From IMG/VR virus record IMGVR_UViG_3300012988_000001, positions 302,161 through 366,160 of that record: 64,000 nucleotides of DNA. The stretch is one strand, 5' to 3'. The notes beneath the pieces were generated by a model. It saw nothing but the letters and a program-made list of their open reading frames with translations. It made no database searches and was not told the DNA's origin. Positions 1-63,554 of this stretch are shown in pieces (within the stretch, counting starts at the first letter, position 1; each line of letters begins with the position of its first letter). Both the position numbers and the translations under genes were made by a program.

Positions 1-245
1 ACTCAGCAGGAGAGCAATGTAACAACTATGGTCGTGGCCGATTCCTGCCGACCCGCTTAGTACTCGTAAGGTACTAAACGATTATAAGTACAGAAGTATA
101 AGGGCAGCGGTGTATACCAAATTGACGATACTATTTCTGTACTTTCTTTTTATGGTAACAGATAACCAATTCTTGCAGTAATCCAGAGGGAGTGTATGCT
201 GGGAGGGGGATATCTTGGAGTGAAAATCTTCATGTTACCTGCATT

Positions 246-380
246 GCGTGACGTTACGTAGAGCACCGAACAGATATCCTAAGTCAGTCTAGAAATACTT
301 AGGAAGGAGTTAGTGTTATCTAGGGTATCATACGAGGTTGATCGCTCGTTGGTGTGGTTCGAGTCCACGGTTACGTACCA
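246..380 (+). ncRNA. tRNA-like RNA with greatly expanded anticodon arm (135 nt)
   Basis: GCGTGAC/GTTACGT acceptor stem, A + CCA end, canonical T-arm TGTGG-TTCGAGT-CCACG, variable hairpin ACGAG/CTCGT; anticodon arm replaced by an 8-bp stem with ~40-nt loop. Confidence 0.6.
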
Positions 381-553
381 CTTAAATCATTTACCTTTAG
401 ACTGTAGTTCGAAATGCAGAATATTGGGGTACATAACATCGCTTAAGGACTTCGTTTAGCGGCGAAGGGGATACGTGCAAGGGTTATGAAGAAAATACCG
501 GGAACGACTGGCTATGCCTTAGATGATTTATTTTTAATTAAAGGAGTACTGAA

Positions 554-946
554 ATGCTTCATGACTTAATAGAGTTGTATTATTATATTAAGAATCTCGA
601 TAAGATTGATAACGCAATATATAGTTGGCGTTTTGAAACATGTGGCATATTACATTATCTGGATTTGAAACAGGTAATGAATCCTCACACTGGTGAGATA
701 TATCTTGCCATCAAATTATATGTAACATCACAGGATTCAAATTTTAAGAGTTCTAGTATTCGAGTTGATCCTAATCGAGTTGTATATAGAGATTCATATG
801 CTCAATTATACACTACCAACCACGAAGGTGCTTTGACTGATGAGAATGCAGATTATCTGTTAACTTGTCTCAGTACTGAAGAGGTTAACGCTATTGGTTG
901 CATCTATGATGAAATCAATGCTTTATATAAACGGAGTCGTGTATGA
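554..946 (+). CDS. hypothetical protein, paralogue of 943..1341
   Basis: AAGGAG SD; shared DLI(E/D)xYYYIK N-terminus and LxxE(N)xxD..L...ST.E...I C-terminus. Confidence 0.8.
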   Translation: MLHDLIELYYYIKNLDKIDNAIYSWRFETCGILHYLDLKQVMNPHTGEIYLAIKLYVTSQDSNFKSSSIRVDPNRVVYRDSYAQLYTTNHEGALTDENADYLLTCLSTEEVNAIGCIYDEINALYKRSRV

Positions 947-1341
947 TCCAAGACTTAATTGATGTTTATTATTACATTAAAAGCGTTGATGACCTTCAAG
1001 ACCTTGAGGGTTGGGCATTTACTGCCGCCACGTCATCCCATGCGATAACAATTGTCCCAACGTGGAATGCAACGTATACTGATCGTAAATGGGAAATTAA
1101 AATAACCACTGGTAACATAAATGATTATCGGTGGATTTTTTTGACCAAAAATCAGGTAGAAGTATTCCATTACTGGAAATATCGTTACGCAATATCAATT
1201 CCCGGATTAATCACCGAGAATGAATCTGATATGTTGATGAAATTCATCAGTACTAATGAGATTTCTATTATAAATCAGATCTTACTTGAAATGCGTAAAT
1301 TAGAGAACAGGAGCGTTCCTTATGAACGAACTAAATCGTAA
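943..1341 (+). CDS. hypothetical protein, paralogue of 554..946
   Basis: overlapping ATGA coupling; sequence similarity to upstream ORF. Confidence 0.8.
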   Translation: MIQDLIDVYYYIKSVDDLQDLEGWAFTAATSSHAITIVPTWNATYTDRKWEIKITTGNINDYRWIFLTKNQVEVFHYWKYRYAISIPGLITENESDMLMKFISTNEISIINQILLEMRKLENRSVPYERTKS

Positions 1342-1837
1342 TAGAGATTACTTCAAACTATTGGCTGAAGAGTTTAGCCATGATATGATTGATGTTCTTT
1401 CTGATGAACCGTGTTTTACTGTTGACTTTTGGAATGGGGAAGAGTATGATTTTAACATCATAGACAACCAAAGTTATCTCCGTGACTATTGTCCGAATTT
1501 CACAGGTGACGTTCATCTCTTTACAAACAAGATCCATGTATGTTATACTCCTGATAACGGCGACATTGAATTGCGTGAGATGTTCCACTTCAATACGTCC
1601 GAGTACGGTGTACCGTCCGAGTACTGCAAAGATGAGATTCATGATAGTGATGCAAATATTATCATTATCAAGAAAGATACTTTCTGGTACAATGACGAAG
1701 AGTACAGAATGGGAAGTACAGAAGAAGAACGTTTCCAACTTTCCTGTACTGATTTGGGGTACTTCATTGAAGTACTAAATGAAGTGAAACGTTTTATCCT
1801 AGAGGATATTGAAGATCATGGAAAACCAGAAGTATAA
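1322..1837 (+). CDS. acidic hypothetical protein, EExFQ-motif family
   Basis: GGAG SD; STEEERFQLS near C-terminus. Confidence 0.8.
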   Translation: MNELNRNRDYFKLLAEEFSHDMIDVLSDEPCFTVDFWNGEEYDFNIIDNQSYLRDYCPNFTGDVHLFTNKIHVCYTPDNGDIELREMFHFNTSEYGVPSEYCKDEIHDSDANIIIIKKDTFWYNDEEYRMGSTEEERFQLSCTDLGYFIEVLNEVKRFILEDIEDHGKPEV

Positions 1838-2237
1838 AGAAATGTTTCAAAATATGCTATTTGATGCAGACTTCGAATTCGGCTTTGTAAGCGGTTCTAA
1901 TTATAAGTTCTTCATCAAGGCGGCTGGCTATCGCATCACTTGGGATCGTTTGGCACATACTATCGAATTGCCATCCCTTGATGAAGCAGGTTCAGTACGA
2001 ACGAATGCTAAATCTTCGCATGGCATGACTCCTGCACAAATGGTCAACCTATTAAAAGGTCAGTCAACTAAGCAGGAGTACTACATCCCTACTTCACAAG
2101 AAGACGAGTTCCAAGCTAGTACTGCTAGGGTTGGTAACATATTACCATTTGTGTTAGTAGAACATCTTGAACGCTTACTTAGTGTTGCACAGGAATGTAT
2201 TTCTCGGTACTCAATTGATGAGAGGAAGTATAAATGA
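1818..2237 (+). CDS. hypothetical protein, EExFQ-motif family
   Basis: GAGG SD; SQEDEFQAST motif. Confidence 0.8.
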   Translation: MENQKYKEMFQNMLFDADFEFGFVSGSNYKFFIKAAGYRITWDRLAHTIELPSLDEAGSVRTNAKSSHGMTPAQMVNLLKGQSTKQEYYIPTSQEDEFQASTARVGNILPFVLVEHLERLLSVAQECISRYSIDERKYK

Positions 2238-2494
2238 AAGATGCACACGGCATTGAGATTACAGAAGGTTGTACTCTCATGTTCGCACAGCGTGAACCAG
2301 ACAAATGGAATCCACGTGATATGATTTTCCGTAAAGTAGAGAAGATTGATCCCGCCTTTGGTGGTCGTATCATCTTTGAAGACAAAAACCAAAATAGCAT
2401 TGCTTACAAGCAAAACATCACAACTCTCCGTGTAGTATCGGAAAGTTTTGTAAAGGCTTGGGAAAGTGGTGAATTGTTTATGAGGGAATTCTAA
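2234..2494 (+). CDS. hypothetical protein
   Basis: coupled ORF with GAGG SD; MKDAHGIEITEG start typical of small phage YopX-like beta proteins. Confidence 0.75.
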   Translation: MKDAHGIEITEGCTLMFAQREPDKWNPRDMIFRKVEKIDPAFGGRIIFEDKNQNSIAYKQNITTLRVVSESFVKAWESGELFMREF

Positions 2495-2736
2495 TGAGTA
2501 ATAAGTACTTTGTACGTTATAGTTACAATGTAACCAACAAGGTTCCACGTGGTGATGGTCTTGGTTGGGGTTATGAAACTGAACAAGTGACCGATTCTTG
2601 TGTATGTGAAATCGATCCAGAGCATATTGATATATCTGAAGTACGTCATACTGTACTTCGTTATGAACTCAATTATTTGGGTGAACGTAAACCAGATGCA
2701 TATGATATTGATATTTTAGTACTGAATAAACTATGA
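2494..2736 (+). CDS. hypothetical protein
   Basis: TAATG coupling. Confidence 0.75.
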   Translation: MSNKYFVRYSYNVTNKVPRGDGLGWGYETEQVTDSCVCEIDPEHIDISEVRHTVLRYELNYLGERKPDAYDIDILVLNKL

Positions 2737-2906
2737 TTAACTATATCTTTCGTGTAAGGGGTAAAGGTATTGTTCCCGGATTGACAGTTGTTCGTGCGTA
2801 CACTGCAACTGATGCTCGTGAAATGCTACTAGCTGAATTCAGCAAGCCCGAAGACGTTACGATCACTTTGGTTGAATGTAGTCAAGAATTATCGTTTTTA
2901 AACTAG
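2733..2906 (+). CDS. small hypothetical protein (57 aa, not in ORF track)
   Basis: ATGA overlap with upstream stop; MINYIFRVRGKG...SFLN*. Confidence 0.6.
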   Translation: MINYIFRVRGKGIVPGLTVVRAYTATDAREMLLAEFSKPEDVTITLVECSQELSFLN

Positions 2907-3007
2907 GACATATTGCGTGATCTGGTTTTATCGTGTAGAATGAGGCTAAAATCATTTGTAAATGCGTTAGAAGCGGAGTCGGGGTTGAATTCCCCGAATG
3001 TCCACCA
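2906..3007 (+). ncRNA. degenerate class II (Leu-like) tRNA or tRNA mimic
   Basis: GGACAT/ATGTCC acceptor, A+CCA, T-arm CGGGG-TTGAATT-CCCCG with non-canonical loop, 8-nt anticodon loop GGCTAAAA. Confidence 0.5.
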
Positions 3008-3009
3008 CC

Positions 3010-3097
3010 GGGAGAGTGATGGAAAGGCATACATAGGCATCTCCAGTGTCTTAGTCTTGATGACAATGCAAGGTTCGAGTCCTTGTCTCTCCCACCA
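3010..3097 (+). tRNA. atypical class II tRNA (Leu-like body, ambiguous anticodon TCC or CCA)
   Basis: GGGAGAG/CTCTCCC acceptor, A73+CCA, T-loop TTCGAGT, variable arm GTC/GAC; anticodon stem AGGCA/TGTCT with loop TCTCCAG; one extra pair between T and acceptor stems. Confidence 0.65.
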
Positions 3098-3245
3098 AAC
3101 AATAATACCTATCATCTAATATCAGTACTGGTGGCGTGTCGTCGAGGACGATGGACAGTACTGACAGGATACCTCGTTCGCCAGCAGTGGGTTCGGGGGA
3201 TGTACGTAAAGTCGTGCTGGGTATGCCAAATTATTTAAAAAACTT

Positions 3246-3274
3246 GGGACAAAACATGAATTTTGTCCTATAAT
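3246..3274 (+). promoter_or_regulatory. class II promoter GGGACA-N12-TGTCC-TATAAT
   Basis: one of five conserved copies with 17-nt spacing. Confidence 0.75.
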
Positions 3275-3295
3275 ATACGTACAAGAGGAAATGAT

Positions 3296-3511
3296 ATGAA
3301 AGCTAAAAACCTGCTGGCGATGTTACAAAACAACCCAGAAGCTGAAATTATTATGCGTGAGCAAGGCTACGAAGTTGATGCGTTCAACGAAGTGTCCACC
3401 GCTCATTTGTACCGCCAAGGTGATGTTGTTTTTGAACGTGGTGAAAACTTCACTGATTTCATCGATGATGAAACCGCAGAGGCTTTAGTCGATATCATCG
3501 TCCTATCATAA
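3296..3511 (+). CDS. hypothetical protein
   Basis: GAGG SD, directly after class II promoter. Confidence 0.8.
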   Translation: MKAKNLLAMLQNNPEAEIIMREQGYEVDAFNEVSTAHLYRQGDVVFERGENFTDFIDDETAEALVDIIVLS

Positions 3512-3545
3512 ATTGTAAATTTGCTAATTGGAGAATCCAAAGAAT

Positions 3546-4127
3546 ATGAAATTAACCCTACGTAAAGCTCATCGTTTAGTTAAAGACCTACAGAACAAGT
3601 TAGGTGTTCGTAATGTTTCCAAGAACATTCACCACAGTGCTGACCTTGCTGAAGTAACAGCAACCATTGCACTTGTCGAAGGTCTAAACCGTGCTAGTGT
3701 TGAACAAACCCTAGACGTAGCAACAGCGATTAGTGAAATCCGTGCAGCAGTACAAGTACTAAACGCTCGTGACGTAGATGGTGATACCATCGATTCTCTA
3801 CTAAACGCTAAGGTTCTAGTAGAAACCAAGATGAAAGTACTTTCATCATTCGCGTATCCTACACAGCAGGATCAAGAAGGCCGTGAACTAGCGATTCGTC
3901 GCCAAGTTTCTGACGTTGCGAAACACGCTGGCTCAGGCATGTACCACAACGAAGTAACTGTTAGTGGTCACAGTGTTGATTCACATACCCTATTCAATGA
4001 ACAGTACGTTGCATTGAAACAGGAACAAGAACGCATTAGCGATAAGCTAGCGTACATCAATAACGCTCTACACGTAGAGATTGATGACAAGTATCTTGAA
4101 CTATTCAAGACACTACAAGTTTTATAA
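3546..4127 (+). CDS. coiled-coil protein (MKLTLRKA...) followed by structured non-coding RNA
   Basis: helical heptad pattern; biased codon usage suggesting high expression. Confidence 0.8.
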   Translation: MKLTLRKAHRLVKDLQNKLGVRNVSKNIHHSADLAEVTATIALVEGLNRASVEQTLDVATAISEIRAAVQVLNARDVDGDTIDSLLNAKVLVETKMKVLSSFAYPTQQDQEGRELAIRRQVSDVAKHAGSGMYHNEVTVSGHSVDSHTLFNEQYVALKQEQERISDKLAYINNALHVEIDDKYLELFKTLQVL

Positions 4128-4400
4128 GGTAGCTTAACCGCTGACCTCCCTTTACCGAAAGGGCATATAGATGTTAAATCTATACTTTACATGGTATGAA
4201 AGATTGTCTGAGGACACTTTTTCGAATAAAGAGTTTGCTGCCATCTACACTATTTTACAGATTATTTCTTGCTTGTTTGTGAAATGGCTTAACTCGATTG
4301 TCCGGTTGCTATGTTGCATGTTTGCATTGTTGCTTCGCTCTTTCGGTAACGTATCTTGGTCCCGTTCTGATGTAAATAGAATGGGACACCCTATTAATTT
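4128..4400 (+). ncRNA. putative structured RNA
   Basis: 13-bp long-range helix TTACCGAAAGGGC (4152-4164)/GCTCTTTCGGTAA (4337-4349), hairpins TATAGAT/ATCTATA and GTCCCGTTCT/AGAATGGGAC. Confidence 0.55.
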
Positions 4401-4415
4401 AAACACGAGGTGCTT

Positions 4416-4985
4416 ATGAATCTTGAGAAGTTTAATCCAAAGAAAGTAAAAGACCTACCATTGCGAAAGTATAATCTAATGCTTCTGGATGGACGATATA
4501 TGCAGTGTATGGAATTGGAATATGTTGAAGACGGTCCAATGACACAAACTGTTTATTACTTTGTTAGTACTGACAGGCAAACGAAAGTAACACCGAAAGA
4601 GGTTGAATCGTTTTGTCGCTATATTCATTTTGATTATGTAGCAGTTGGTAATGGATTTGCTCTCACTAAAAACGGTTCAAAGATATTTCGTGAAAACGTG
4701 TATGGTGTAATTGAAAACGAACAATATGCACAGCACTTCATTATTAATATGAACAATAACGCAAACACTTACACTCCTGATACAATTCATCGTAATGATA
4801 TCGTTGAATGTATTGACGGTCATTTCTACAATGGTGATAAAGCCATTGTTACTGAAGTACGCAAACCGTATGATGTAGAAGACCACGGAACCGTTGAAGT
4901 GTATATGCTTGATAAGAAGTTTTTTGAGCACTTCACTTACACCGGATGGAATCAATTCTTGAAGGTGGTGGAAAAATACGACTAA
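4416..4985 (+). CDS. hypothetical protein (possible C-terminal KOW/SH3-like domain)
   Basis: GAGGTG SD; DIVECIDGHFYNGDKAIVTEV. Confidence 0.75.
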   Translation: MNLEKFNPKKVKDLPLRKYNLMLLDGRYMQCMELEYVEDGPMTQTVYYFVSTDRQTKVTPKEVESFCRYIHFDYVAVGNGFALTKNGSKIFRENVYGVIENEQYAQHFIINMNNNANTYTPDTIHRNDIVECIDGHFYNGDKAIVTEVRKPYDVEDHGTVEVYMLDKKFFEHFTYTGWNQFLKVVEKYD

Positions 4986-5017
4986 TGTACTAAATACTCC
5001 TTTAAGTAGGAGTAAAT

Positions 5018-5368
5018 ATGTTCAGTACACATCTTAAAGTTGAACTAATAAACAACAAAGGTAAGAAATGGAAAGTACTAGAGGACTTGACATACCATAG
5101 CGATTACGGTATGATCACTGTGCCAAAAGACTTCCAGACTGACTTTGCTAGCGTCCCTCGTATCCCTGTGGTTTTCGAACTTGTAGGTGACAGAGGCCAC
5201 GCAGCAGCAACCGTACACGATTGGTTATACCAACATGGTGACCTATCGAGGAAGCAAGCCGATTTAGTACTTCGTCAAGCATTACGCGATACGAATGTAG
5301 GAAAGGCTAGATCGTATGTAATGTACTATGGAGTACGTGCATTCGGATGGTTGTTCTTCAAAAAATAA
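5018..5368 (+). CDS. DUF1353 family protein
   Basis: VPKDFQTDFASVPR and AATVHDWLY motifs. Confidence 0.85.
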   Translation: MFSTHLKVELINNKGKKWKVLEDLTYHSDYGMITVPKDFQTDFASVPRIPVVFELVGDRGHAAATVHDWLYQHGDLSRKQADLVLRQALRDTNVGKARSYVMYYGVRAFGWLFFKK

Positions 5369-5382
5369 AGTTAGAGCGGTTG

Positions 5383-5545
5383 TAGCCAGTACAGGGCAGT
5401 ACGTAGGAGTAGTGACCTATTAGTATCCTGTGGTCTTAATAGACTTTCACGAGGTCAGTACATACGTTAGTCACTTTTCGTATGTAGGAATAAAGCTGAT
5501 AAAAAATGAGTAAGTATACCATTCACTGGTTAGGGTGGGCTTACG
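5383..5545 (+). ncRNA. putative multi-branched structured RNA upstream of tRNA-Gly
   Basis: closing TAGCCAGT/ACTGGTTA, internal TGACCT/AGGTCA, CTATTA/TAATAG, ACATACG/CGTATGT. Confidence 0.45.
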
Positions 5546-5549
5546 TCTT

Positions 5550-5625
5550 GCGGTAGTAGCTCAGATGGTAGAGCGGGAGTTTTCCAAACTTCAGGTCTTC
5601 GGTTCGAAACCGAATTATCGCTCCA
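5550..5625 (+). tRNA. tRNA-Gly (TCC)
   Basis: 76-nt cloverleaf, D-arm GCTC/GAGC, loop TTTCCAA, TTCGAAA T-loop, U73 + CCA. Confidence 0.95.
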
Positions 5626-5636
5626 CGAGGTAAAAT

Positions 5637-6185
5637 ATGTATAATAAGAAGATAGAAATATCTGGCATTAACAATGGTTACCAATATTTTATTGATTATG
5701 AACATCCATTAGCAACCGGAAATTCAGGAAGGGTGTATTTACACCGTCACATCGCATCAATTAAAATTAGTCGATGGGTTACTGGTAATGAACATGTTCA
5801 CCATATTGATGAAAACAAACTTAATAATGATGAAGTTAATTTGGAAGTACTATCAGATCTTGAACATCGTCGTTTACATTGGAAAGAAAGAAATAATTTG
5901 CCAGATGATTACGAATGGTTTGATTCTGAAATTATTCCATGTAATTGGTGCTCAGAATTATTTCAAACGAAATATAAAGATCACATGTATTGTTCTATTA
6001 GTTGCGGATCATTAGCACAACCACAAAAATTCCCAATTGATAAAGATATATTATCCGAATTGATTTGGAAAATGCCAGCCACTGAGATAGCCAAAATATA
6101 TGGTTGCTCTGATAAAACCATCGGTAAAAAATGTAACCGATATAATATAACCAAACCACCACGCGGTTATTGGTTGCGTAAATAA
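5637..6185 (+). CDS. HNH homing endonuclease
   Basis: YLHRHIA...EHVHHIDENKLNN..NLEVLSDLEHRRLH HNH motif, CxxC and C-terminal HTH-like tail; sits next to a tRNA. Confidence 0.9.
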   Translation: MYNKKIEISGINNGYQYFIDYEHPLATGNSGRVYLHRHIASIKISRWVTGNEHVHHIDENKLNNDEVNLEVLSDLEHRRLHWKERNNLPDDYEWFDSEIIPCNWCSELFQTKYKDHMYCSISCGSLAQPQKFPIDKDILSELIWKMPATEIAKIYGCSDKTIGKKCNRYNITKPPRGYWLRK

Positions 6186-6198
6186 CAGGAGAATACAA

Positions 6199-6456
6199 AT
6201 GAAGTTTTCCAAGATTTTAGAAGAATTACAAGCGTCATGGAAAAATGGCGTATACGTTGACCTTCCAGAGTACCGCAGTAATGAACGCATTTATGTTCAT
6301 CGCAGTGGTAAACTCTTCCACGTTAAATCACAATACGGAGGTCCATTGTGGTGTATTCCAACTGAATTAACCAGCTACGAGAAGGAAGACAGCCGTTGGC
6401 AAGTCAACCCACTTCAAAGCAACAAACTACCAGAGAAATTCTCTGAAGGTTGGTAA
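6199..6456 (+). CDS. hypothetical protein
   Basis: AGGAG SD. Confidence 0.75.
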   Translation: MKFSKILEELQASWKNGVYVDLPEYRSNERIYVHRSGKLFHVKSQYGGPLWCIPTELTSYEKEDSRWQVNPLQSNKLPEKFSEGW

Positions 6457-6522
6457 CAGATCTCTCCCGGCAGTGATGATATATTACAAAAGCTGCCATC
6501 CCCATAACGTAAGTTATGTTTT

Positions 6523-6560
6523 GCCGATAGTATGATCATCTACTATCGGCTTTTTTCTTA
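6523..6560 (+). terminator. intrinsic terminator
   Basis: GCCGATAGTA/TACTATCGGC hairpin followed by TTTTTT. Confidence 0.8.
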
Positions 6561-6574
6561 TCTGGAGAAAGAAA

Positions 6575-7063
6575 ATGAACACTAAGAATCTAGCAAAGTA
6601 CGTAATGCGTAGATGTAAACTATTAAGTACTTTTAATGCTGACATGTGGAGTAATAAGGTAGATAATAAATTCCATGCTGGACGTGTATTCAACACAGCT
6701 AAAATACCAGCAGGAACGGTGCGTCAATCCCTTTATATGAGTACTGACGGTACTATCTATATGGGAATCCTTGATTGTGATCCGGGATTTGGGAATGATG
6801 AAATTGAACTAGATATTGAGTACAATTTCGATACTCGTGTTATTACCTTAAATTATAATAACATTACTCTTCAAGAAGCATATGAAGACATGGAAGATGA
6901 TGAAGAAGATTGCTTTACTGTTTCTTATGAACTTACTGATTCCGAAGCAGAGTACTTCCAAACTAGCTTAGTTGAAGATCCTATGTTTGAATTTGAAGAT
7001 GAATTAATGATGATTACATTCTTTGAAACAATTCGTGAACGTTTCTATAAGGTTAAATCATGA
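6575..7063 (+). CDS. acidic protein, EExFQ-motif family
   Basis: SEAEYFQTSLV. Confidence 0.8.
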   Translation: MNTKNLAKYVMRRCKLLSTFNADMWSNKVDNKFHAGRVFNTAKIPAGTVRQSLYMSTDGTIYMGILDCDPGFGNDEIELDIEYNFDTRVITLNYNNITLQEAYEDMEDDEEDCFTVSYELTDSEAEYFQTSLVEDPMFEFEDELMMITFFETIRERFYKVKS

Positions 7064-7569: not shown

Positions 7570-7786
7570 TCAACACCGTAAAATTACAGGCTATCGTGAA
7601 CTAAGTGCAGAAGAGATTGCACTCATGAATGAAGTCAAAGAAATGAGTGCTCAAGTAGGGCAGTTAATTGAGAAACTACACTCAACCCCAGACGTTGACA
7701 AACGCTGGCTAAATATTGCCAAGACAGATTTACAGAAAGGCTTCATGAGTGCTGTACGCAGCGTTGCAAAGCCTGATTCATTCTAA
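7562..7786 (+). CDS. acb2: Acb2/Tad1-family cyclic-nucleotide sponge (anti-CBASS)
   Basis: MDNQHRKITGYRELSxEEI...RWLNIAKTDLQKGFM...R.VAKPDSF closely matches the recalled Acb2 signature. Confidence 0.9.
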   Translation: MDNQHRKITGYRELSAEEIALMNEVKEMSAQVGQLIEKLHSTPDVDKRWLNIAKTDLQKGFMSAVRSVAKPDSF

Positions 7787-7795
7787 GGATAGAAT

Positions 7796-8476: not shown

Positions 8477-8535
8477 TTGACACCGAGCCTGTACTGATGT
8501 AAAATTGGTACAGGCTTTTTAATTGGAGGATTCCT

Positions 8536-54076: not shown

Positions 54077-54087
54077 ATTTTGTCCTA

Positions 54088-54759: not shown

Positions 54760-54770
54760 ATTTTCTCTCC

Positions 54771-55478: not shown

Positions 55479-55479
55479 A

Positions 55480-56613: not shown

Positions 56614-56716
56614 ATTTTTTTACCCTCCCTTAAGGTAATCTCATCAATTATCTCTAAAGATACTTATTATGTATTTAACCAAAAAAAGGCCAGTACAGTC
56701 AATGTACTGACCCATC

Positions 56717-57364
56717 TTATACACTCATTGTCATCCTGTAATTATCTATTATCCCTATTAATGGTATAGCATTATCAGTACTATTACCAATCCTCAATGT
56801 ATTCGAAGATGAACTAAAACCTAAACTCATCACCTGTGATGTACCAATCTGTACATCATTAAGCCAAAAAGATAAGTTCGTACCAACTCTCTGTAACTTA
56901 ATCTTGAACCAAGTATTAATCGGTAACTTAGTAGAACCAACACCGAATCGGAATCTCTGTACCGATCCTGTAGTACTGTAACCATCTAACGATATCTGAC
57001 TAGCTGCACCAAACACGTTGTTTAATGTAACCCAATAAGATCCAGTACCTAAGTTATTATTTAAATTACCAACTAATATCTGCGTAGCAGTAGAAGTCAA
57101 ATACACATTACTCTCAATAACAAAATTAGTACTGTTACCTATACTAAACACCGATGGAACTCCACCAGAACCTATCTGCAAATATCCAGATGCTGGAAAT
57201 TGTATAGCATTATTCTGCGAAGTCACAAAATTAGTCGGTGTAACATTTATGTTTGAACTCTTTACCACAAAATCATGCATCTGATTCTGTAGTACTGAGA
57301 TTATTTTATTTGGATTGTCATACGAAGTATTCCCGTATTTCACTATCCTTGCAAAAGGTATCAT
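56717..57364 (-). CDS. MIPFARI-family protein, LamG/ConA-like domain
   Basis: NTWFKIKLQRVG...LRIG...GIIDNYRMT. Confidence 0.85.
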   Translation of the reverse strand: MIPFARIVKYGNTSYDNPNKIISVLQNQMHDFVVKSSNINVTPTNFVTSQNNAIQFPASGYLQIGSGGVPSVFSIGNSTNFVIESNVYLTSTATQILVGNLNNNLGTGSYWVTLNNVFGAASQISLDGYSTTGSVQRFRFGVGSTKLPINTWFKIKLQRVGTNLSFWLNDVQIGTSQVMSLGFSSSSNTLRIGNSTDNAIPLIGIIDNYRMTMSV

Positions 57365-58518
57365 TCTAAACCTCCCGGTAAATCCAATTTAACAAATGGT
57401 GCATTAACAATCGAACCCTGTCCAACACAGTAACCAACGCAGTATAGAGTACTTTTACCATCTACATCTTGATATAACACGTACATGTTTTTGTTACCAG
57501 ATGAAGTCCCACCGTTACCGCATATGAACTTAATATCACTGGAATTAAAACCACTAGGCATTGCTCTTATATTCACAACACTTCCACTGTTACTGTTAGA
57601 CGAACTAGCAATCGGCAACTGATTTGATGAATACGCACCAAGCATTAGCGTTGTTATTCCTATTCCACATCCAGCAAACGCAGCAACTCGTCTTGGTGCA
57701 TTAGATGCAGCAGTTAAGGTATTATTAAAACTAGCGACACCAGTTAATGAACCACAATGTACCGCCCTACCATCACTCAATATACCAGTACTGAATGTTC
57801 CACCATTCGCCATCTGATAATCTGTATAAGCTAATGTTCCCAATTTAGTGAACGAAAAAAACGTACTAGTTGCAGCAGAACTAATTAATCTGTTACTATT
57901 CGAACCTATACCATATAAGAACCCATCAGTACCCTGAATGATAAAAACAAACCCACTTGCAGTTTGCTCGAATGATATCATTTTTTCAACTGTTACTACA
58001 CTCGATGTGTTTAATCTCCATGTGCGATCTATAACAGTACTGCCATCTGCTAATGTCAACGCTACACTATATAATGTATTATCATATGTTAATATAGCAA
58101 CATAATTTGTATGATTATATATCTGCTTAATACCCTTTGCCAAAATTTCCGCAGGGATATGATCAGTAACATCCAACCATGATAAATTAGATGTTGGTAA
58201 GTTTGGAGTACTAAACTTCGCCGCTAATATTGAACCACATACATATACTTTATCATCATTTGTAACTGCTATTGTACTAGCCAGTCTATTTGAACTAAAT
58301 GATTTAACATTTGAGATATTACTTTTGTACCAACCCTGATTTGCAGTTGAAACAGTTGTCCCAATTCCCATAGACCCACTCGAAGTATATCCAAATGCCC
58401 ACATTTCACCATCAGCCGTTAATAACATCAAATGTGTATCGTTTGCTTGTAAATCTTTAATCTTTTGTAACCCCGCTACGGTATTACCATATTTGCTTAT
58501 TCTAGCAAAAGGTATCAT
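57361..58518 (-). CDS. MIPFARI-family protein, RCC1-like beta-propeller
   Basis: HLMLLTADGEMWAFG..SGSMGIG. Confidence 0.85.
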   Translation of the reverse strand: MIPFARISKYGNTVAGLQKIKDLQANDTHLMLLTADGEMWAFGYTSSGSMGIGTTVSTANQGWYKSNISNVKSFSSNRLASTIAVTNDDKVYVCGSILAAKFSTPNLPTSNLSWLDVTDHIPAEILAKGIKQIYNHTNYVAILTYDNTLYSVALTLADGSTVIDRTWRLNTSSVVTVEKMISFEQTASGFVFIIQGTDGFLYGIGSNSNRLISSAATSTFFSFTKLGTLAYTDYQMANGGTFSTGILSDGRAVHCGSLTGVASFNNTLTAASNAPRRVAAFAGCGIGITTLMLGAYSSNQLPIASSSNSNSGSVVNIRAMPSGFNSSDIKFICGNGGTSSGNKNMYVLYQDVDGKSTLYCVGYCVGQGSIVNAPFVKLDLPGGLE

Positions 58519-58528
58519 GTCTCTCTCC

Positions 58529-59446
58529 TTATGTTAACTTAAATGCTTGTGTTGTCGTTGCACCAGAATTATTCTTTCCACCCATAGTGAGTATAAAATT
58601 ATTCGCACTATTCGCGAATATATTACAGTTCACCAAATAACTAGGAACCGTACCCATAGACTCAATAGAAGAATTACCCGGAACATATGTGTACATATTA
58701 CCAGTACTATAACCAAACAATACAACAATGTCTTTATATGCAGCTATACGCCCTATAGCCTCTGTAGTGCTCAATATGACTCGCCACGTCCCAGACACCG
58801 TATTATACCCCATTAGGTATAACGTGCTCCCTGTGCCTCCCATAACCAATAATTCAGTACCAACCAACACCATGCTCGTTCCCAATGCCATAGGATATGG
58901 GGAAGTGGCTAATGTCGTCCACGTTGAAGTACTGATATCAAATACTGACGCTGTGTTAGCCGCCGCTAATGTACTATAAGAACCAAACAACCACAACTTA
59001 TTATCATAACATACCATAGAAGCATGTAATCTGGCTGCTGGTTTCGTCCCTAAAGTATTAACTAAACTCCACGCATTAGTACTGACATTATATACATATA
59101 AATCGTTCTGCATACTTCCACCCGCTGGTAATGATGTACTACCACCAAATGAATATACTCTGTTATTAACATCATCAAATGCCATTGCTGGTGCACTTCG
59201 GTTTGAACCAAATTGTGCTAGCTGTGTCCAGTTATTAGTACTAGGATTATATCTCCAAAAGTCTCGGTAATATGTATTGGTCAGTACTCCACCCATAGCA
59301 TATATCTCTCCTGTACTCGCCGCACAAAAACCCATCTCCGCTCTTGTACTCATTGCACTGTAAGTCTGTGCTTCGTAATTTCCTAAGAATGAATTTTGTG
59401 GTATAATCACATTCCCGTACTTTACTATCCTCGCAAAAGGTATCAT
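58529..59446 (-). CDS. MIPFARI-family protein, Kelch-repeat beta-propeller
   Basis: IYAMGG..WRYNP..NNW, VYSFGG..YNV..NAW, LLVMGG. Confidence 0.85.
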   Translation of the reverse strand: MIPFARIVKYGNVIIPQNSFLGNYEAQTYSAMSTRAEMGFCAASTGEIYAMGGVLTNTYYRDFWRYNPSTNNWTQLAQFGSNRSAPAMAFDDVNNRVYSFGGSTSLPAGGSMQNDLYVYNVSTNAWSLVNTLGTKPAARLHASMVCYDNKLWLFGSYSTLAAANTASVFDISTSTWTTLATSPYPMALGTSMVLVGTELLVMGGTGSTLYLMGYNTVSGTWRVILSTTEAIGRIAAYKDIVVLFGYSTGNMYTYVPGNSSIESMGTVPSYLVNCNIFANSANNFILTMGGKNNSGATTTQAFKLT

Positions 59447-60156
59447 GAATAAATCTCCTGTACTGTGAATCCGGTAACCGGATACTTCATACCAGCCCGC
59501 ATCCGGTATCTCTCAACTATAGCACTATTTGTAGGAGTACTGTTATATACATCACCACATAAAGTGAAAGCAGCCAACGATCCACCAGTACTTAATACAT
59601 CGTACTGTGCAGTAGGTACACCATCTATATACAAATAATGTCGGTTTATTGACGAATCATACATAAAACAATAATGATGCCACACTGGAGTATTCCATGG
59701 AATTGCAGTGTAATTGTAATATTGAACGTTATTACCTAATTTAAATGTCGCAGAACTACCACTATAATCATTTAATAATTGATATTTGGGAGTACTAGCC
59801 CACGGACCGCTAAATGTATTTAAACAATTAATTGCACCAAAAAATGTATATCCTGATATCAATGTCCGGTGCCAAAAATCTAAAGTATATGATGATGTAA
59901 CCCATTGAACCGGAAAACCATTTTTACCTATAATACTCTTCTTTACTTGTACCCCTGAACCATATGGCATATCAGTTCCAATACTGATAGTAGCTGAACC
60001 AGCAGCACCATTTATATCCTGTACAGTTATCGTATTACCTACATAATCAGTAAACTCTGTACTAGAAAATATAGTACTATCCCATGCCAATAATGATCCA
60101 CTGTACCATGGCAACACAGTGTTCCCGTACTTACTTATTCTCGCAAATGGTATCAT
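59443..60156 (-). CDS. MIPFARI-family protein, LamG/ConA-like domain
   Basis: YTLDFW...WHHYC...LYIDG...ERYRMRAG. Confidence 0.85.
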   Translation of the reverse strand: MIPFARISKYGNTVLPWYSGSLLAWDSTIFSSTEFTDYVGNTITVQDINGAAGSATISIGTDMPYGSGVQVKKSIIGKNGFPVQWVTSSYTLDFWHRTLISGYTFFGAINCLNTFSGPWASTPKYQLLNDYSGSSATFKLGNNVQYYNYTAIPWNTPVWHHYCFMYDSSINRHYLYIDGVPTAQYDVLSTGGSLAAFTLCGDVYNSTPTNSAIVERYRMRAGMKYPVTGFTVQEIYS

Positions 60157-60184
60157 TTCCCCCCTCCATAATTTTCCATTATTA

Positions 60185-60194
60185 CATATTTACC
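60185..60194 (-). promoter_or_regulatory. putative late promoter GGTAAATATG for the MIPFARI array
   Basis: same 10-mer and spacing as at 18675. Confidence 0.55.
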
Positions 60195-60215
60195 CAAATT
60201 CCCCAAAAGATTCTT

Positions 60216-60244
60216 GGGACAAACACCACAAAATGTCCTATAAT
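60216..60244 (+). promoter_or_regulatory. class II promoter
   Basis: GGGACA-N12-TGTCC-TATAAT. Confidence 0.75.
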
Positions 60245-60274
60245 ATCTGTATATAAATCCCGCAAGGAGCAATC

Positions 60275-61288
60275 ATGAATAAACCAAAAAATACACCATT
60301 CTATACCAAATTCATCGCACAAGTATACTCTCACATCATAACCTCCGACGACAATACCGTAGTTATGAATCTCGACAACAATACAATTCTCTCCGTGAAC
60401 TTCAATTCACCTACGTATAAAACACTAAACAATACATTCGTAATGACTAACCCTCCTGTACTACATATCAGTAATACAGAATATAACCTATACGTAAAAG
60501 TAGATACCGAAACCCTTACCGTATCTCTCAGAGACTACAAAACCGATGACCTAATCTATGATGTATCTTTCAACGAAATTAATGCCGTCCAACTACAGTC
60601 AGATGTTAAACAAAGCAAAAAACCATTCATCGACTCAGTGGCTATCGCGTACCAAATCCTTAAGTACATCCCATATGTCACACCAGCATATAACAACGGT
60701 AAAGATAAAATCTTTAATACCGCTAAAGAACTTAAAGCCCATGTAGCAGAATGCATCAATCGTACTATCTTACACTTCAATAATCGCGAACAAGAAATTA
60801 TCCTCAGTACAGAAAAAGATATGCAGGAAATCACCGGAGTAATTGATTACCTCAATAATCTCAGTACTCAAAGCGTTAAAGAAACTAATAGCCTAGAACT
60901 ACAAGTCAAAGCAACAGTCAATGACACCACCTATATCATTAATATCAACGACAAACTCTCAATAGATATTATAGATAAAGAAGATGCAAATATTACCTAC
61001 AAACTACAGTACGACCCAGATAACTCTTCTGTACTACAAGTAATAAACAAAAACTTTAATAACACTATTCATACCATCCCTACATTCATTCTACAGAATA
61101 ACAAAATGGATGAGGAAGAAATTAAAGCACTACGTAGTACATACAAACTATTCGATGCCACTTGTCAAGGTTATCGAATTTTACAACACTTCCATAACTC
61201 TGGTACGTTCTCTATTACAGATAAAGCATATGATATCAAACAACAAGTCTATTCAGCACTAGGGTATACTCCATTTATCCTCAAATAA
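60275..61288 (+). CDS. hypothetical protein (Asn/Thr-rich, G-poor coding strand)
   Basis: AAGGAG SD, 337 aa. Confidence 0.8.
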   Translation: MNKPKNTPFYTKFIAQVYSHIITSDDNTVVMNLDNNTILSVNFNSPTYKTLNNTFVMTNPPVLHISNTEYNLYVKVDTETLTVSLRDYKTDDLIYDVSFNEINAVQLQSDVKQSKKPFIDSVAIAYQILKYIPYVTPAYNNGKDKIFNTAKELKAHVAECINRTILHFNNREQEIILSTEKDMQEITGVIDYLNNLSTQSVKETNSLELQVKATVNDTTYIININDKLSIDIIDKEDANITYKLQYDPDNSSVLQVINKNFNNTIHTIPTFILQNNKMDEEEIKALRSTYKLFDATCQGYRILQHFHNSGTFSITDKAYDIKQQVYSALGYTPFILK

Positions 61289-61495
61289 GTATACGCCAGA
61301 ACGCATAGGAAGCCCGTAGGCAAGACTTCTCTTACACCCTGTACAGGTGTCGCTCCTGTAGATTGCGTCCAGTAGACGCTTATCGAAAGGATTCAACACC
61401 TGTAAAAATACCCAACTGTTGTGTTGTACAGTACTTTTCTTTTTATAATTATACAGGGAATCGTTTCATATGCAACTATTCTCCTGTACTCATGT

Positions 61496-61531
61496 GAGCT
61501 ACGGTAAGCTACGGTAAGCTACGGTAAGCTA
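61496..61531 (+). repeat. 10-bp tandem repeat (AGCTACGGTA) x ~3.5
   Basis: GAGCTACGGTAAGCTACGGTAAGCTACGGTAAGCTAC. Confidence 0.9.
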
Positions 61532-62143
61532 CTGTGAAGTACTCCTTCTGTACTTTACCCCCTTCCGCTATATCTTCTCTTAAAGAGAAGTATAAAGTAC
61601 TGAAAAGTACTTGTACCTTGTTTTGTAAAAGCCCTTTCACCTTTCAGGGAAAGTACCATCGACCCTTGAGCTAAAATCTGGAAAGTACTCCATCCTAAAT
61701 CTCGATCCTAGAAATTTTGGAGTACCTTCCAACCTTCAGCCCAATGTTGGAGTACTGACCAAATCATTAACCGATGCACCAAAAGTACTTGACACGTTTG
61801 TTAGACTATGGTAACATGCCATTAGTGGGAATCCACCCTGCGTGTACGTGTATGTATATAATACCAGTACTGGATAAATTAACAGTAAATTTAATGAAAA
61901 TAATGATTGACATGCTGGTGGGTTTTAGGCATAATAGTTGCCATAGAGTCATGGTTTTCCTTCCATAACTTTTCGTTGAATATAAACAGTACGGCTTACC
62001 CTGCAAGTATTCAGTACTGATATTAAGCTAAGAGGAAGTTCACCACCTATCACCTACCAGACTTCCAATCTGGGAAATGATAAAAAATGTAAGAATAATA
62101 AGAAGGGAGAATCCCCACTGAGAAATACAGTCTATTGAGATTA

Positions 62144-62195
62144 TCAGTACTACAATAGTTACTCCACAAGAATGAGAAGACTATTGTAGTACTGA
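62144..62195. repeat. perfect 16-bp inverted repeat, 20-nt spacer
   Basis: TCAGTACTACAATAGT / ACTATTGTAGTACTGA. Confidence 0.9.
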
Positions 62196-62311
62196 CACTT
62201 TTATGGTAAGATTTGTTGGATGGATTTTGGGTATACTTGTCCTGTACTCTGGACGGATTTTGGGCGTAGTTGTGCTAGTTGCGTTTATACGAATGATAAG
62301 CGTTCTCCTTT

Positions 62312-62413
62312 TGAGAATGGTTCTCGTTTGCATTTGCGAATGAGATTGATTCTCATTTGCTGGTGGAAATGATAATGATTCGCATTAGCCCCTGAGAATG
62401 ATAATGACTATCA
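62312..62413. promoter_or_regulatory. four Fur-box-like 7-1-7 palindromes at 29-bp period
   Basis: boxes start at 62312, 62341, 62370, 62399; best copy TGATAAT-G-ACTATCA. Confidence 0.6.
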
Positions 62414-62509
62414 TTTGCAGTACTGGCCTGTTTTTGCCATTGCCTAGCCTACCGCGACGGAATATATTATTCCGGCAGTATCTCAATTCATCTTTTTTTG
62501 TTCACGGCT

Positions 62510-62593
62510 ATTATCTCAATATATGGGGGAAGTGTCAAGCGTTTATTTTACTAAAAATAGTAGTTGACAGGGTAGCCAGTACTGATATATAAT
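62510..62593. promoter_or_regulatory. divergent sigma70 promoters
   Basis: + strand TTGACA(62564)-N18-TATAAT; - strand TTGACA(62538)-N17-GATAAT. Confidence 0.65.
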
Positions 62594-62618
62594 AATCACA
62601 ACAAAGAGAAATTTGTAG

Positions 62619-62705
62619 CCCACAGGGTGCGGGGGTCTGTCCTTAATTTTTTAAATGCGAATGATTATCATTTCGCTCATATGATACATTTCCGCACCCT
62701 GTGGG
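62619..62705 (+). ncRNA. long hairpin enclosing a fifth Fur-like box
   Basis: perfect 14-bp CCCACAGGGTGCGG/CCGCACCCTGTGGG; TGCGAAT-G-ATTATCA at 62656-62670. Confidence 0.5.
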
Positions 62706-62844
62706 TTCGGGAGTTTCGCCTCCATGTAAAACATTATACGGGTTTCCTGTGCTTGAGTCAACATCTTTTTAAAAGAAAATCGAAAATAATTCCGGTTGTT
62801 TTATCCCTCCAGTACTGGCATACTTAAAGCCTACTATATAAGGA

Positions 62845-63150
62845 ATGAAAACAATGTATCATTTAACATTAGAAAAGCATTTATCTAGCATTTTGGAAAA
62901 GGGTTTAATCCCTGCTATTGGATCGCGTAGTCGGGCGTTTGGTGAAAAAGTGGCGGCGGTATACTTGTTTAAGCACGTTGACGATGCATACGACGCTTTA
63001 GCTAATTGGTACGGGGATGCAGTAGGGGATCAATCTGTTGTACTGTTAGAAGTTGATAGCCAGCGTTTTAGTACTGTAAACGTTGCGTTTGAATATCAGT
63101 GTTTAGAAGTAATAAAAAGTACTGAAATAAAAGTTTTAGAATATCTTTAA
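62845..63150 (+). CDS. putative ADP-ribosyltransferase-fold protein (Tpt1/KptA-like)
   Basis: YHLT....SILEKGLIP....R....VYL....V.LL.V...FEY. Confidence 0.55.
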   Translation: MKTMYHLTLEKHLSSILEKGLIPAIGSRSRAFGEKVAAVYLFKHVDDAYDALANWYGDAVGDQSVVLLEVDSQRFSTVNVAFEYQCLEVIKSTEIKVLEYL

Positions 63151-63229
63151 AAAGTACTTGCATTGTTTTTTCATTCTGTCATAATAGCTCTATCGAAACG
63201 AGATACACAAACACATTAAGGAAAGTATT

Positions 63230-63472
63230 ATGTTACGCATTGTTAAAATGACTCCATCAGTAGGTAAAGCAATTGTTTATGCAGTTGTAGTATCCGAAGA
63301 TAATGCCAACCATTTACACGATTTACTGAGTCGCTTCTTTGAGCGTGAAGGATATCAATTCTTTACTATCTCATATGTTGAACGTTTTGTTTGCCCTTGT
63401 GTGGATATTTCAGAATACAAAGTAACGGCCTTTATGAATGCCGACGAAATGATCTCAAACGGTACTTTGTAA
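63230..63472 (+). CDS. hypothetical early protein
   Basis: sigma70 promoter, AAACACATTAAGGAA leader. Confidence 0.75.
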   Translation: MLRIVKMTPSVGKAIVYAVVVSEDNANHLHDLLSRFFEREGYQFFTISYVERFVCPCVDISEYKVTAFMNADEMISNGTL

Positions 63473-63554
63473 GTTAGTATTAAAAGTACTTGCAAAGTAT
63501 AAGCGAGTACTTTATAATACTTACATACAAACGAAACACATTAAGGAAAGAATC

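Follow-up and report, generated by a model that had tools for sequence, protein, structure and literature searches.

The palindrome AGTACT is about ten times too frequent in a clade of giant bacterial viruses that otherwise purges short palindromes, and individual copies are held in place over evolutionary time and placed beside early promoters. We examined a 64-kb window, the right end of a 366-kb RaK2-like jumbo phage contig from soil, in which a first-pass annotation had noted that AGTACT is highly iterated throughout and had inferred a selected genome-wide signal. The observation holds, and the interpretation is partly supported: a selected signal at the DNA level is well supported, but the functions proposed for it (a binding site for a condensing, packaging or injection protein, a modification target, a recombination cue or a self-recognition mark) could not be narrowed to one. 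We found no published description.

Enrichment of AGTACT at the DNA level

The window contains 195 AGTACT sites between positions 59 and 63798, about one per 330 bp, while one hundred dinucleotide-preserving shuffles give 21.3 +/- 4.6 sites with a maximum of 33. The hand counts of the first-pass annotation, 17 sites in 1-5300 and 11 in 61430-62195, are exact; window GC is 38.7% rather than the about 35% it assumed, but its expectation of roughly one site per 3 kb still holds. AGTACT is the most frequent of all 4096 hexamers, whereas 24 of the 64 palindromic hexamers are absent and so is GCGC, making the word the opposite of an avoided restriction site. Extended forms are common, with CAGTACTG occurring 28 times and AAGTACTT 22 times, but the flanks carry little information (weak TTC-AGTACT-GAA), such that the sites are not parts of a longer repeat. 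Their spacing is close to Poisson and slightly under-dispersed (index of dispersion 0.63 in 500-bp bins over 1-61000, p = 0.0006).

The excess is independent of coding constraints; its disappearance under such controls had been specified in advance as a condition that would refute the observation. Genes on both strands hold 170 sites, against 49.5 +/- 6.1 in synonymous-codon shuffles (z = 20) and 27.6 +/- 5.2 in codon-order shuffles (z = 27). All three reading frames are enriched, with 82/38/50 sites observed against 27/8.5/13 expected under synonymous shuffling, and density is 3.9 per kb in intergenic DNA and 3.0 per kb in coding DNA. The word has also reshaped proteins: Ser-Thr is the most over-represented dipeptide (154 against 92.5) and Val-Leu ranks fifth, while the reversed dipeptides are not enriched, and about half of all amino-acid contexts that can encode the word do so (82/154, 38/64 and 50/114).

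The first-pass annotation had also accepted that its case would fail if only the sub-words GTAC or TACT were enriched. This is not what we find: TACT alone is at 1.7x, and enrichment rises from GTAC (2.6x) to AGTAC (4.6x) to AGTACT (9.2x). Single changes at the four inner positions reduce it to 0.5-1.7x, and changes at the outer positions to 2.2-3.0x. The hexamer count is, however, only 1.12x what two independent AGTAC/GTACT half-sites predict (195 against 174; pooled over the clade, 1015 against 899), meaning that most of the signal is GTAC with a strong A/T flank preference. The two half-sites contribute almost independently, with a small positive coupling of 1.13x, compared to about 0.45x in outgroups and E. 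coli. Flank preferences are symmetric in the sense orientation (TCAGTACT 30, AGTACTGA 34), as are half-site counts on the sense strand (AGTAC 286 against GTACT 276). These properties are what additive binding by a symmetric dimer predicts.

Clade distribution, conservation and placement

All 18 clade loci sampled, from RaK2, Turkey5, CMSTMSU, fHe-Yen9-04, Munch, fENko-Kae01 and metagenomic relatives, carry the trait, with 1347 sites against 144 expected in 427 kb. The same loci share a total lack of GCGC (0 against 477 expected in 427 kb). Three outgroup jumbo phages, MIJ3, Atu_ph07 and XacN1, have neither trait, nor does E. coli, where a 50-kb sample holds 3 AGTACT sites against 11.6 expected. 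Avoidance of CCWGG and AAGCTT varies between the clade loci while the AGTACT excess does not, pointing to a phage-intrinsic cause rather than host restriction enzymes. At about 25% divergence, 52-73% of sites are retained against 21-26% of all hexamers (p from 1e-3 to 3e-7 in eight comparisons), a two- to three-fold better retention than that of average hexamers.

Sites are densest at the genome end and in early intergenic DNA. Position 61571 of the window aligns with base 1 of Salmonella phage Munch and with the PhageTerm-defined repeat start of Klebsiella phage fENko-Kae01, and therefore corresponds to the start of the direct terminal repeat in relatives. In the early regions of relatives, intergenic density is 8.6-9.3 per kb against 3.3-3.5 per kb in coding DNA. 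Site pairs 20-23 bp apart number 30 against 11.9 expected (p = 8e-6), and about half of them lie just upstream of the -35 and -10 elements of a promoter. The overlaps with -35 elements that the first-pass annotation reported at three positions are real, and lie at 46228, 63153 and 63485. The individual features are as follows.

59..63798 (no strand): the array of 195 AGTACT sites, covering coding DNA of both strands, all three frames and intergenic DNA.
61571..62195 (no strand): the densest stretch, noncoding, with nine sites in the first roughly 620 bp after the position homologous to the genome's left physical end; in the window-versus-Munch alignment, which covers this region, 9 of 11 sites are conserved against 33% of all hexamers.
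61596..61611 (no strand): two sites 10 bp apart (AAAGTACTGAAAAGTACTTG), 25 bp inside the inferred terminus, following a terminal inverted repeat, ATATCTTCTCT/AGAGAAGTATA; both sites are invariant in the window, Munch and fENko-Kae01.
63485..63511 (+): an early-promoter cassette with a site pair 21 bp apart, AAAAGTACT-TGCAA (-35) ... GCG-AGTACT-TTATAAT (-10), placing the sites at about -41..-36 and -20..-15 in the usual numbering; the same architecture recurs in the terminal repeat of Munch.
63153..63158 (+): a site abutting the -35 element of a sigma-70-type promoter (AAAAGTACT-TGCAT, 17-bp spacer, CATAAT) upstream of the ORF at 63230.
46228..46233 (+): a site abutting a -35 element (AGTAC-TTGACA, 17-bp spacer, TATTAT).
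61784..61789 (+): a site abutting a -35 element (AAAAGTAC-TTGACA, 17-bp spacer, TAACAT) in the leading noncoding region.
25325..25342 (+): two sites 12 bp apart bracketing TTGACA, followed at the correct spacing by TATACT, which may be an internal promoter.

A real promoter-adjacent subclass therefore exists, but the word as a whole does not behave as a sigma-70 promoter element. Only 6 of 195 window sites, and 14-16 of about 210 in the early regions of relatives, match a strict promoter-context pattern; the site at 63153 is one further case, whose CATAAT -10 element the pattern missed. By contrast, 87% of window sites lie inside genes.

A proposed recognition word and its alternatives

We propose that AGTACT is a positively selected recognition word of the RaK2-like jumbo phages, with a GTAC core, a strong A/T preference at the outer positions and a weak C/G preference one base further out. 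Most likely, though we hold this only tentatively, it is bound by a clade-encoded, two-fold symmetric sequence-specific protein, either a dimeric DNA-binding protein or a DNA enzyme. Such a protein would find about 3 sites per kb on phage DNA, or roughly 1100 per genome by extrapolation, against about 0.06 per kb in the host sample, and the word would therefore mark 'self' DNA in a phage lineage that lacks T4-type base hypermodification. Two layers can be seen: an even, genome-wide layer inside genes, and a denser layer at the genome end and in early intergenic DNA, where site pairs two helical turns apart lie just upstream of the -35 and -10 elements of sigma-70 promoters. The latter is the geometry of an operator, so the same factor probably also switches early transcription. 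Our analysis directly demonstrates the enrichment, its independence from coding constraints, its clade distribution, its positional conservation and its placement at the terminus and at promoters; that a protein reads the word, that this protein is phage-encoded, and what its binding achieves are all inferences.

Several observations temper this model. No candidate reader protein was found: among 109 window ORFs, none matches a Pfam methyltransferase or a classical DNA-binding domain, apart from a sigma-70-like factor and HNH endonucleases. A strong sequence-specific repair or conversion bias would also produce positional conservation and enrichment in all frames, and a 6-bp site with nearly uninformative flanks is more typical of restriction-modification enzymes than of helix-turn-helix regulators. 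Further, AAAAAGTAC upstream of a -35 element also fits the proximal UP-element consensus, so promoter-adjacent copies could be tolerated rather than functional. Since the hexamer is only modestly above the product of its half-sites, a monomeric reader of AGTAC cannot be excluded.

The best-surviving alternative, possible but in our view unlikely, is that the word is the target of a phage DNA methyltransferase, for example the PF05869 Dam-family enzyme of the clade acting on the A of GTAC, with the high site density serving an epigenetic purpose such as self-marking or switching early promoters between the methylated incoming genome and newly replicated DNA. Sharp 6-bp specificity with weak flanks fits this idea, the clade encodes adenine and cytosine methyltransferases, and Munch carries a divergent PF05869 methyltransferase of unknown specificity. 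In addition, sites sit directly against the -35 and -10 elements, where methylation could affect RNA polymerase. Yet a methyltransferase explains protection, not a ten-fold accumulation of targets. RaK2 has only two putative methyltransferases, and the reported m5C there lies at a CpG, which AGTACT does not contain. A modification target is thus neither shown nor excluded: modification of virion DNA was not measured here, as public runs holding this phage are available only as assembled contigs, and the papers searched report no methylome for the clade. No methyltransferase is encoded in the window.

Somewhat less likely is a neutral drive, in which sequence-specific repair or biased gene conversion, as proposed for HIP1 or shown for Vsr and CCWGG, keeps converting near-cognate words into AGTACT, leaving the word without a function of its own. 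A drive would produce an excess in every frame and in noncoding DNA, distorted amino-acid usage and maintenance at orthologous positions. However, transition neighbors are not depleted (AATACT/AGTATT 1.16x, AGCACT/AGTGCT 1.72x and GGTACT/AGTACC 2.3x), and a tblastn search of 50,697 phage records for Vsr homologs matched only 40, none of them a RaK2-like phage. The one measured analog, CCWGG in E. coli, reaches about 1.5-1.8x rather than 9x. Nor does a drive predict the concentration at the genome end, the three-fold higher density in early intergenic DNA or the 20-23 bp pairing at promoters.

A host reader, recruited or titrated by the phage, is very unlikely. The obvious candidate is the nucleoid-occlusion factor SlmA, whose binding could block cell division: its 12-bp box GTGAGTACTCAC has AGTACT at its center, AGTACT is rare in the E. 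coli sample, and the clade's cultured members infect Enterobacterales. The box, GT(R)AG(Y)(R)CT(Y)AC, requires G1, T2, A4 and G5 (PMC3020112), with a purine at position 3, but only 21 of 390 half-sites (5%) have GT at positions -3 and -2. G is the least frequent base next to the word (0.14) and C the most frequent (0.37), and full boxes number 2, 0 and 1 in the window, Munch and fENko-Kae01, respectively. Soil relatives with non-enteric restriction-avoidance profiles keep the trait, and no other host factor with this specificity is known to us.

A signal acting in RNA, with AGUACU as a processing, stability or translation signal, is less likely still: most sites lie in transcribed DNA and a palindrome would serve genes on both strands, but flank preferences are mirror-symmetric with respect to the sense strand, and the highest densities are in promoter-proximal DNA upstream of transcription starts and at the genome terminus. 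Finally, a by-product of composition, codon or dipeptide bias, purging of other palindromes or repeated DNA is refuted by the dinucleotide, synonymous-codon and codon-order shuffles (z = 20-38); the flanks are uninformative and outgroups of similar GC content lack the excess. The pentamer-based Markov expectation (174) does approach the observed count, but 61% of all AGTAC pentamers lie inside the hexamer, making that conditioning nearly circular.

Related genomic words and self-marking systems

Among the closest known systems is HIP1, the highly iterated palindrome GCGATCGC of cyanobacteria and the precedent raised by the first-pass annotation. HIP1 is likewise a short palindrome enriched genome-wide, by one to two orders of magnitude, inside genes in all frames and in noncoding DNA, and shared by related genomes; its function is unresolved and a link to methyltransferases is suspected. 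The word described here differs in being 6 bp rather than 8 bp, in occurring in a lytic phage lineage that otherwise purges palindromes, in its second layer at the genome terminus and against promoter -35 and -10 elements, and in that no cognate methyltransferase has been identified; the specificities of the clade's methyltransferases are unknown.

The SlmA-binding sequence shares an identical core, is a palindrome bound by a dimer and is scattered over a chromosome, but E. coli has only some tens of SlmA sites and the flanking GT(R)/(Y)AC that SlmA requires is absent here. Vsr/Dcm very-short-patch repair shows that a sequence-specific process can raise the frequency of a short palindrome without selection on individual sites, but it depletes a specific neighbor word, which is not seen for AGTACT. 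Chi (GCTGGTGG), KOPS and DNA uptake sequences are over-represented short words that proteins use to recognize a genome or a direction along it. These words are asymmetric and strand-polar, whereas AGTACT is a palindrome with no polarity. A polar recombination cue, one of the originally suggested functions, is thus unlikely, and that niche appears to be filled by Chi itself, which is also enriched in these phages.

The closest functional analogy to our proposed mechanism is phage SPO1 TF1 with hydroxymethyluracil DNA, together with the T4 Alc/hydroxymethylcytosine logic of marking self DNA. In those systems a phage factor tells its own genome from the host's, binds preferentially near early promoters and takes part in temporal switching. 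There, the mark is a modified base; here it would be an iterated sequence word, and no TF1-like or Alc-like protein has been identified in this clade. A more speculative and unlikely, but not excluded, extension is that RaK2-like jumbo phages, relatives of T4 that lack hydroxymethylcytosine, encode self/non-self discrimination in plain sequence rather than in modified bases. In this view, the genome is saturated with AGTACT for a phage protein that organizes, protects or transcribes 'self' DNA and switches early promoters, while its complete freedom from GCGC, which occurs at 6.8 per kb in the host sample, would allow a phage nuclease to destroy host DNA without harming the phage. The two traits have exactly the same distribution across the phages sampled.

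Enrichment of AGTACT and its independence from coding constraints

AGTACT occurs 195 times in the 64-kb window, while one hundred dinucleotide-preserving shuffles of the same sequence give 21.3 +/- 4.6 sites with a maximum of 33. The first-pass annotation had counted by hand 17 sites in positions 1-5300 and 11 in 61430-62195, and both counts are exact; its observation of a highly iterated AGTACT word therefore holds. AGTACT is the most frequent of all hexamers, in a genome where 24 of the 64 palindromic hexamers are missing altogether. Enrichment rises stepwise from GTAC (2.6x) to AGTAC (4.6x) to AGTACT (9.2x), whereas single substitutions reduce it to 0.5-1.7x at the four inner positions and to 2.2-3.0x at the outer positions. 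The recognised unit is therefore GTAC with a strong A/T flank preference, and a weak preference for C/G follows one base further out: CAGTACTG occurs 28 times, AAGTACTT 22 times and GAGTACTC once.

Loss of the excess once dicodon and amino-acid usage were controlled for had been set out in advance as grounds for discarding the observation, and the excess is not lost under synonymous-codon or codon-order shuffles. We called 136 ORFs, covering 90% of the window. Of the 195 sites, 82, 38 and 50 lie in the three codon phases and 25 lie in intergenic DNA, with similar densities of 3.0 per kb in coding DNA and 3.9 per kb in intergenic DNA. The 170 sites observed in genes compare with 49.5 +/- 6.1 when synonymous codons are shuffled within each gene and 27.6 +/- 5.2 when codon order is shuffled, and each phase is individually 3-4.5x above the synonymous expectation. 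The pressure is strong enough to show in the encoded proteins: Ser-Thr (AGT-ACT) is the most over-represented of all 400 dipeptides, at 154 against 92.5, and Val-Leu (GTA-CTN) ranks fifth, yet Thr-Ser and Leu-Val are at expectation. About half of all amino-acid contexts that could encode the word do so (82/154, 38/64 and 50/114).

Flank preferences are mirror-symmetric on the sense strand (TCAGTACT 30, AGTACTGA 34), which argues for a DNA-level signal rather than an RNA-level one. The two half-sites behave almost independently, the full palindrome being 1.12x above their product in the window and 1.13x pooled over the clade (1015 against 899), while in outgroup phages and E. coli the same ratio is about 0.45x.

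Clade distribution, conservation and placement of sites

The window forms the last 64 kb of a 366,160-bp soil-metagenome contig, and is distantly related to Salmonella phages Munch, 7t3 and PHA46 and to Klebsiella phage fENko-Kae01. Window position 61571 aligns with base 1 of Munch, and also with the start of the 19.7-kb direct terminal repeat that PhageTerm defined in fENko-Kae01; positions 61571-64000 are therefore the first 2.4 kb of the terminal repeat. The rest of the window is an early-type region of small genes.

The AGTACT excess is shared by every clade member sampled, together with a complete absence of GCGC, and neither trait is found in three outgroup jumbo phages or in a 50-kb sample of E. 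coli K-12. The clade loci counted are the window and loci L001, L002, L004-L009 and L013-L021 of our set.

Observed / expected counts of AGTACT and of GCGC in clade members, outgroup phages and E. coli
Munch: AGTACT 205 / 17; GCGC 0 / 48
fENko-Kae01: AGTACT 214 / 17; GCGC 0 / 49
RaK2 (replication and structural region): AGTACT 58 / 9; GCGC 0 / 16
Turkey5: AGTACT 79 / 8; GCGC 0 / 27
CMSTMSU: AGTACT 98 / 9; GCGC 0 / 24
Yersinia phage fHe-Yen9-04: AGTACT 44 / 8; GCGC 0 / 17
All 18 clade loci (427 kb), including the window, 2 IMG/VR and 9 metagenome loci: AGTACT 1347 / 144; GCGC 0 / 477
Outgroup MIJ3: AGTACT 3 / 8; GCGC 35 / 29
Outgroup Atu_ph07: AGTACT 1 / 4; GCGC 12 / 14
Outgroup XacN1: AGTACT 0 / 3; GCGC 24 / 44
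E. coli K-12 (50 kb): AGTACT 3 / 11.6; GCGC 342 / 215

The two IMG/VR relatives and nine further metagenome loci each show 6-12x enrichment of AGTACT. In the window itself GCGC is absent against about 89 sites expected, whereas it is present at normal levels in the outgroup phages and is abundant in E. coli (6.8 per kb). Avoidance of CCWGG and AAGCTT differs between clade members and looks like host-specific restriction avoidance, while the AGTACT excess and the absence of GCGC do not differ and look intrinsic to the phage lineage. The GCGC gap holds even in clade members that do not avoid CCWGG or AAGCTT, suggesting a phage-intrinsic cause such as a GCGC-directed nuclease.

Individual sites are conserved. 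In BLAST alignments of the window with four relatives at about 25% nucleotide divergence, 52-73% of AGTACT sites are retained in place, compared with only 21-26% of all hexamers (p from 1e-3 to 3e-7), and per-base divergence is 0.09-0.19 inside sites and about 0.25 outside. About half of the sites nevertheless differ between such relatives, so sites also turn over. We also asked whether homing-endonuclease genes are depleted of sites, as slow accumulation would predict, but the difference is not significant (10 sites against 15 expected, p = 0.12). Strain-level variation in public runs is uninformative, since these are assembled contigs, and none of the 40 variant places examined, out of 466, falls inside the 2 sites covered.

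Inside genes the sites are spread nearly at random, and slightly more evenly than Poisson. In L008 (Escherichia phage CMSTMSU, 100-125 kb) AGTACT is strongly clustered, with 9 of 25 one-kilobase bins empty (index of dispersion 3.2); this record is flagged UNVERIFIED and has fragmented gene calls, and part of the stretch may be foreign or misassembled. Density rises toward the genome end, and the first 620 bp of the terminal repeat hold 9 sites. In Munch and fENko-Kae01 the repeat carries about 6 sites per kb against about 2.7 per kb elsewhere, and in the sampled early regions of these phages (50 kb each) intergenic DNA has 8.6-9.3 per kb against 3.3-3.5 per kb in coding DNA.

The intergenic sites of the Munch repeat reveal a recurrent early-promoter cassette: AAAAGTACT-TTGACA or TTTACA, a spacer, then AG-AGTACT-TTATAAT. 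With the usual numbering, one site lies at about -41..-36 and a second at about -20..-15, and the window copy of this cassette is at 63485/63506. Across 14 non-redundant loci, site pairs 20-23 bp apart are 2.5x over-represented (30 against 11.9, p = 8e-6), and about half of these pairs sit in this promoter geometry. No other spacing stands out, pairs closer than 10 bp are depleted, and no helical periodicity is found beyond the 20-23 bp pairs.

A possible recognition word for a symmetric protein

We propose that AGTACT is under selection as a recognition site for a two-fold symmetric, probably clade-encoded, protein or enzyme. The first-pass annotation had interpreted the word as a selected genome-wide signal with one of several possible functions, and this interpretation is partly supported. 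The roughly 50-fold density contrast with the sampled host DNA makes the word a potential 'self' mark, and this lineage, unlike T4, has no hydroxymethylcytosine pathway. Its operator-like pairing at early promoters and its concentration at the genome end suggest a role in early transcription control or in handling of the genome ends. A methyltransferase or DNA-binding protein had been named beforehand as something to look for, and within the window none was found by Pfam searches of 109 ORFs or PHROGs searches of 20, which detected only a sigma-70-like factor, HNH endonucleases, a T7 gp0.7-like kinase, an Acb2/Tad1-like protein and beta-propeller proteins; no candidate reader protein lies in the window, and gene content was not compared between trait-positive genera and the outgroup phages. 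The identical distribution of the GCGC gap invites the bolder idea of a two-part self/non-self code written in sequence, but whereas the two distributions are observed, that idea is inference only.

Of the alternatives, a methyltransferase target remains possible. The clade encodes a Dam-family (PF05869) enzyme and a cytosine-5 methyltransferase. RaK2 DNA is reported to carry m5C at a CpG, making cytosine-5 methylation of AGTACT unlikely, and methylation alone would not explain why targets accumulate. A Vsr-like repair drive is not supported: transition-neighbour words are not depleted, no Vsr homologue appears in any RaK2-like genome among 50,697 phage records, and a drive does not predict the placement at the terminus and at promoters. 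A promoter element is rejected as the general explanation, because only about 3% of window sites and 7% of sites in the Munch and fENko-Kae01 early regions are in strict promoter context, although a promoter-adjacent subclass is real. Binding by SlmA is rejected on its required flanks, as its box GTGAGTACTCAC has the same core but needs G1, T2 and a purine at position 3. A longer repeat or mobile element is rejected because flanking positions carry at most 0.13 bits, and composition, codon and dipeptide bias are rejected by the three shuffles.

Full-text searches of the literature library found no paper that mentions AGTACT together with any member of this phage group, and no description of the trait. 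The phenomenon resembles the cyanobacterial palindrome HIP1 in kind, but differs in its setting, in its association with the terminus and promoters, and in being coupled to the complete absence of a tetramer. If a protein reads this word, it is a genome-wide handle on the biology of a large and therapeutically used group of jumbo phages of Klebsiella, E. coli, Salmonella, Yersinia and related bacteria, in which more than 80% of genes have no known function. It would show how a phage with apparently unhypermodified DNA tells its own 350-kb genome from the host chromosome, a question that is also open for T5-like phages, and would provide a phage counterpart to the unsolved HIP1 problem in a system that is easy to manipulate. 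In practical terms, the word and the absence of GCGC together give a simple sequence signature for recognising this clade in metagenomes. ScaI and RsaI would cut these genomes unusually often (about 3 and 9 sites per kb) and HhaI not at all, which matters for restriction typing.

Other features of the window and its relatives

The inferred left physical end, which is the start of the terminal repeat, is preceded by tandem repeats and lies within an inverted repeat; this region may be where the terminase recognises the DNA. The E. coli Chi octamer GCTGGTGG is strongly enriched, with 8 copies in the window against 0.4 expected, 15 in Munch 1-50 kb and 19 in fENko-Kae01 310-360 kb, each of the latter against about 0.2; loci L001 (Munch), L002 and L008 are concerned in addition to the window. 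Most copies lie in one orientation within the terminal repeat, and Munch and fENko-Kae01 have an inverted Chi pair about 490 bp from the genome end. The leading noncoding region also contains a cluster of Fur-box-like sequences, in which three matches to GATAATGATAATCATTATC with up to 3 mismatches compare with 0.05 expected. A further copy, AATGCGAATGATTATCATTTCGC, is 100% conserved in Munch and fENko-Kae01 and sits in the loop between long inverted arms, GCCCACAGGGTGCGG and CCGCACCCTGTGGG.

Features of the window
61571: inferred left physical end, the start of the terminal repeat
61497-61530: three tandem copies of GCTACGGTAA, preceding the terminus
61569-61593: inverted repeat, ATATCTTCTCT-TAA-AGAGAAGTATA, containing the terminus
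30641, 40343, 44121, 46170, 48449, 55724, 61914 and 62359: Chi octamers
62280-62420 and 62640-62665: Fur-box-like sequences, the three matches lying at 62371-62418
23617-24585 (+): phage sigma-70-family factor
44185-44823 (+): T7 gp0.7-like protein kinase (phrog_15752)
51027-60156 (-): block of about ten ORFs of 215-388 aa, beta-propeller paralogues
45822-45862, 47921-47961, 48737-48791, 63195-63228 and 63520-63550: short intergenic repeats
5550-5622 and 9874-9958 (+): two tRNA genes

In the sigma-70-like factor, Pfam regions 2 and 3 are detected and region 4 is not, and relatives in soil metagenomes share 41-86% identity. Host-takeover and anti-defence genes are present. Besides the kinase, an ORF among those of one alignment (A2), which was not resolved to a single ORF, carries an Acb2/Tad1 hairpin domain, typical of sponges for cyclic-nucleotide defence signals. 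Munch also encodes a DksA/TraR-type zinc-finger protein in its terminal repeat (L001 4428-4688). The window searches additionally detected HNH homing endonucleases. The minus-strand block carries RCC1-like, Kelch and Laminin_G_3 beta-propeller or lectin domains and is syntenic with ENKO_515c-528c of fENko-Kae01; these are probably tail or hair fibre proteins, and GC skew reverses across the block. The short intergenic repeats, which break public assemblies, include a conserved leader (CGAAACGAGATACACAAACACATTAAGGAAA) ahead of many early genes.
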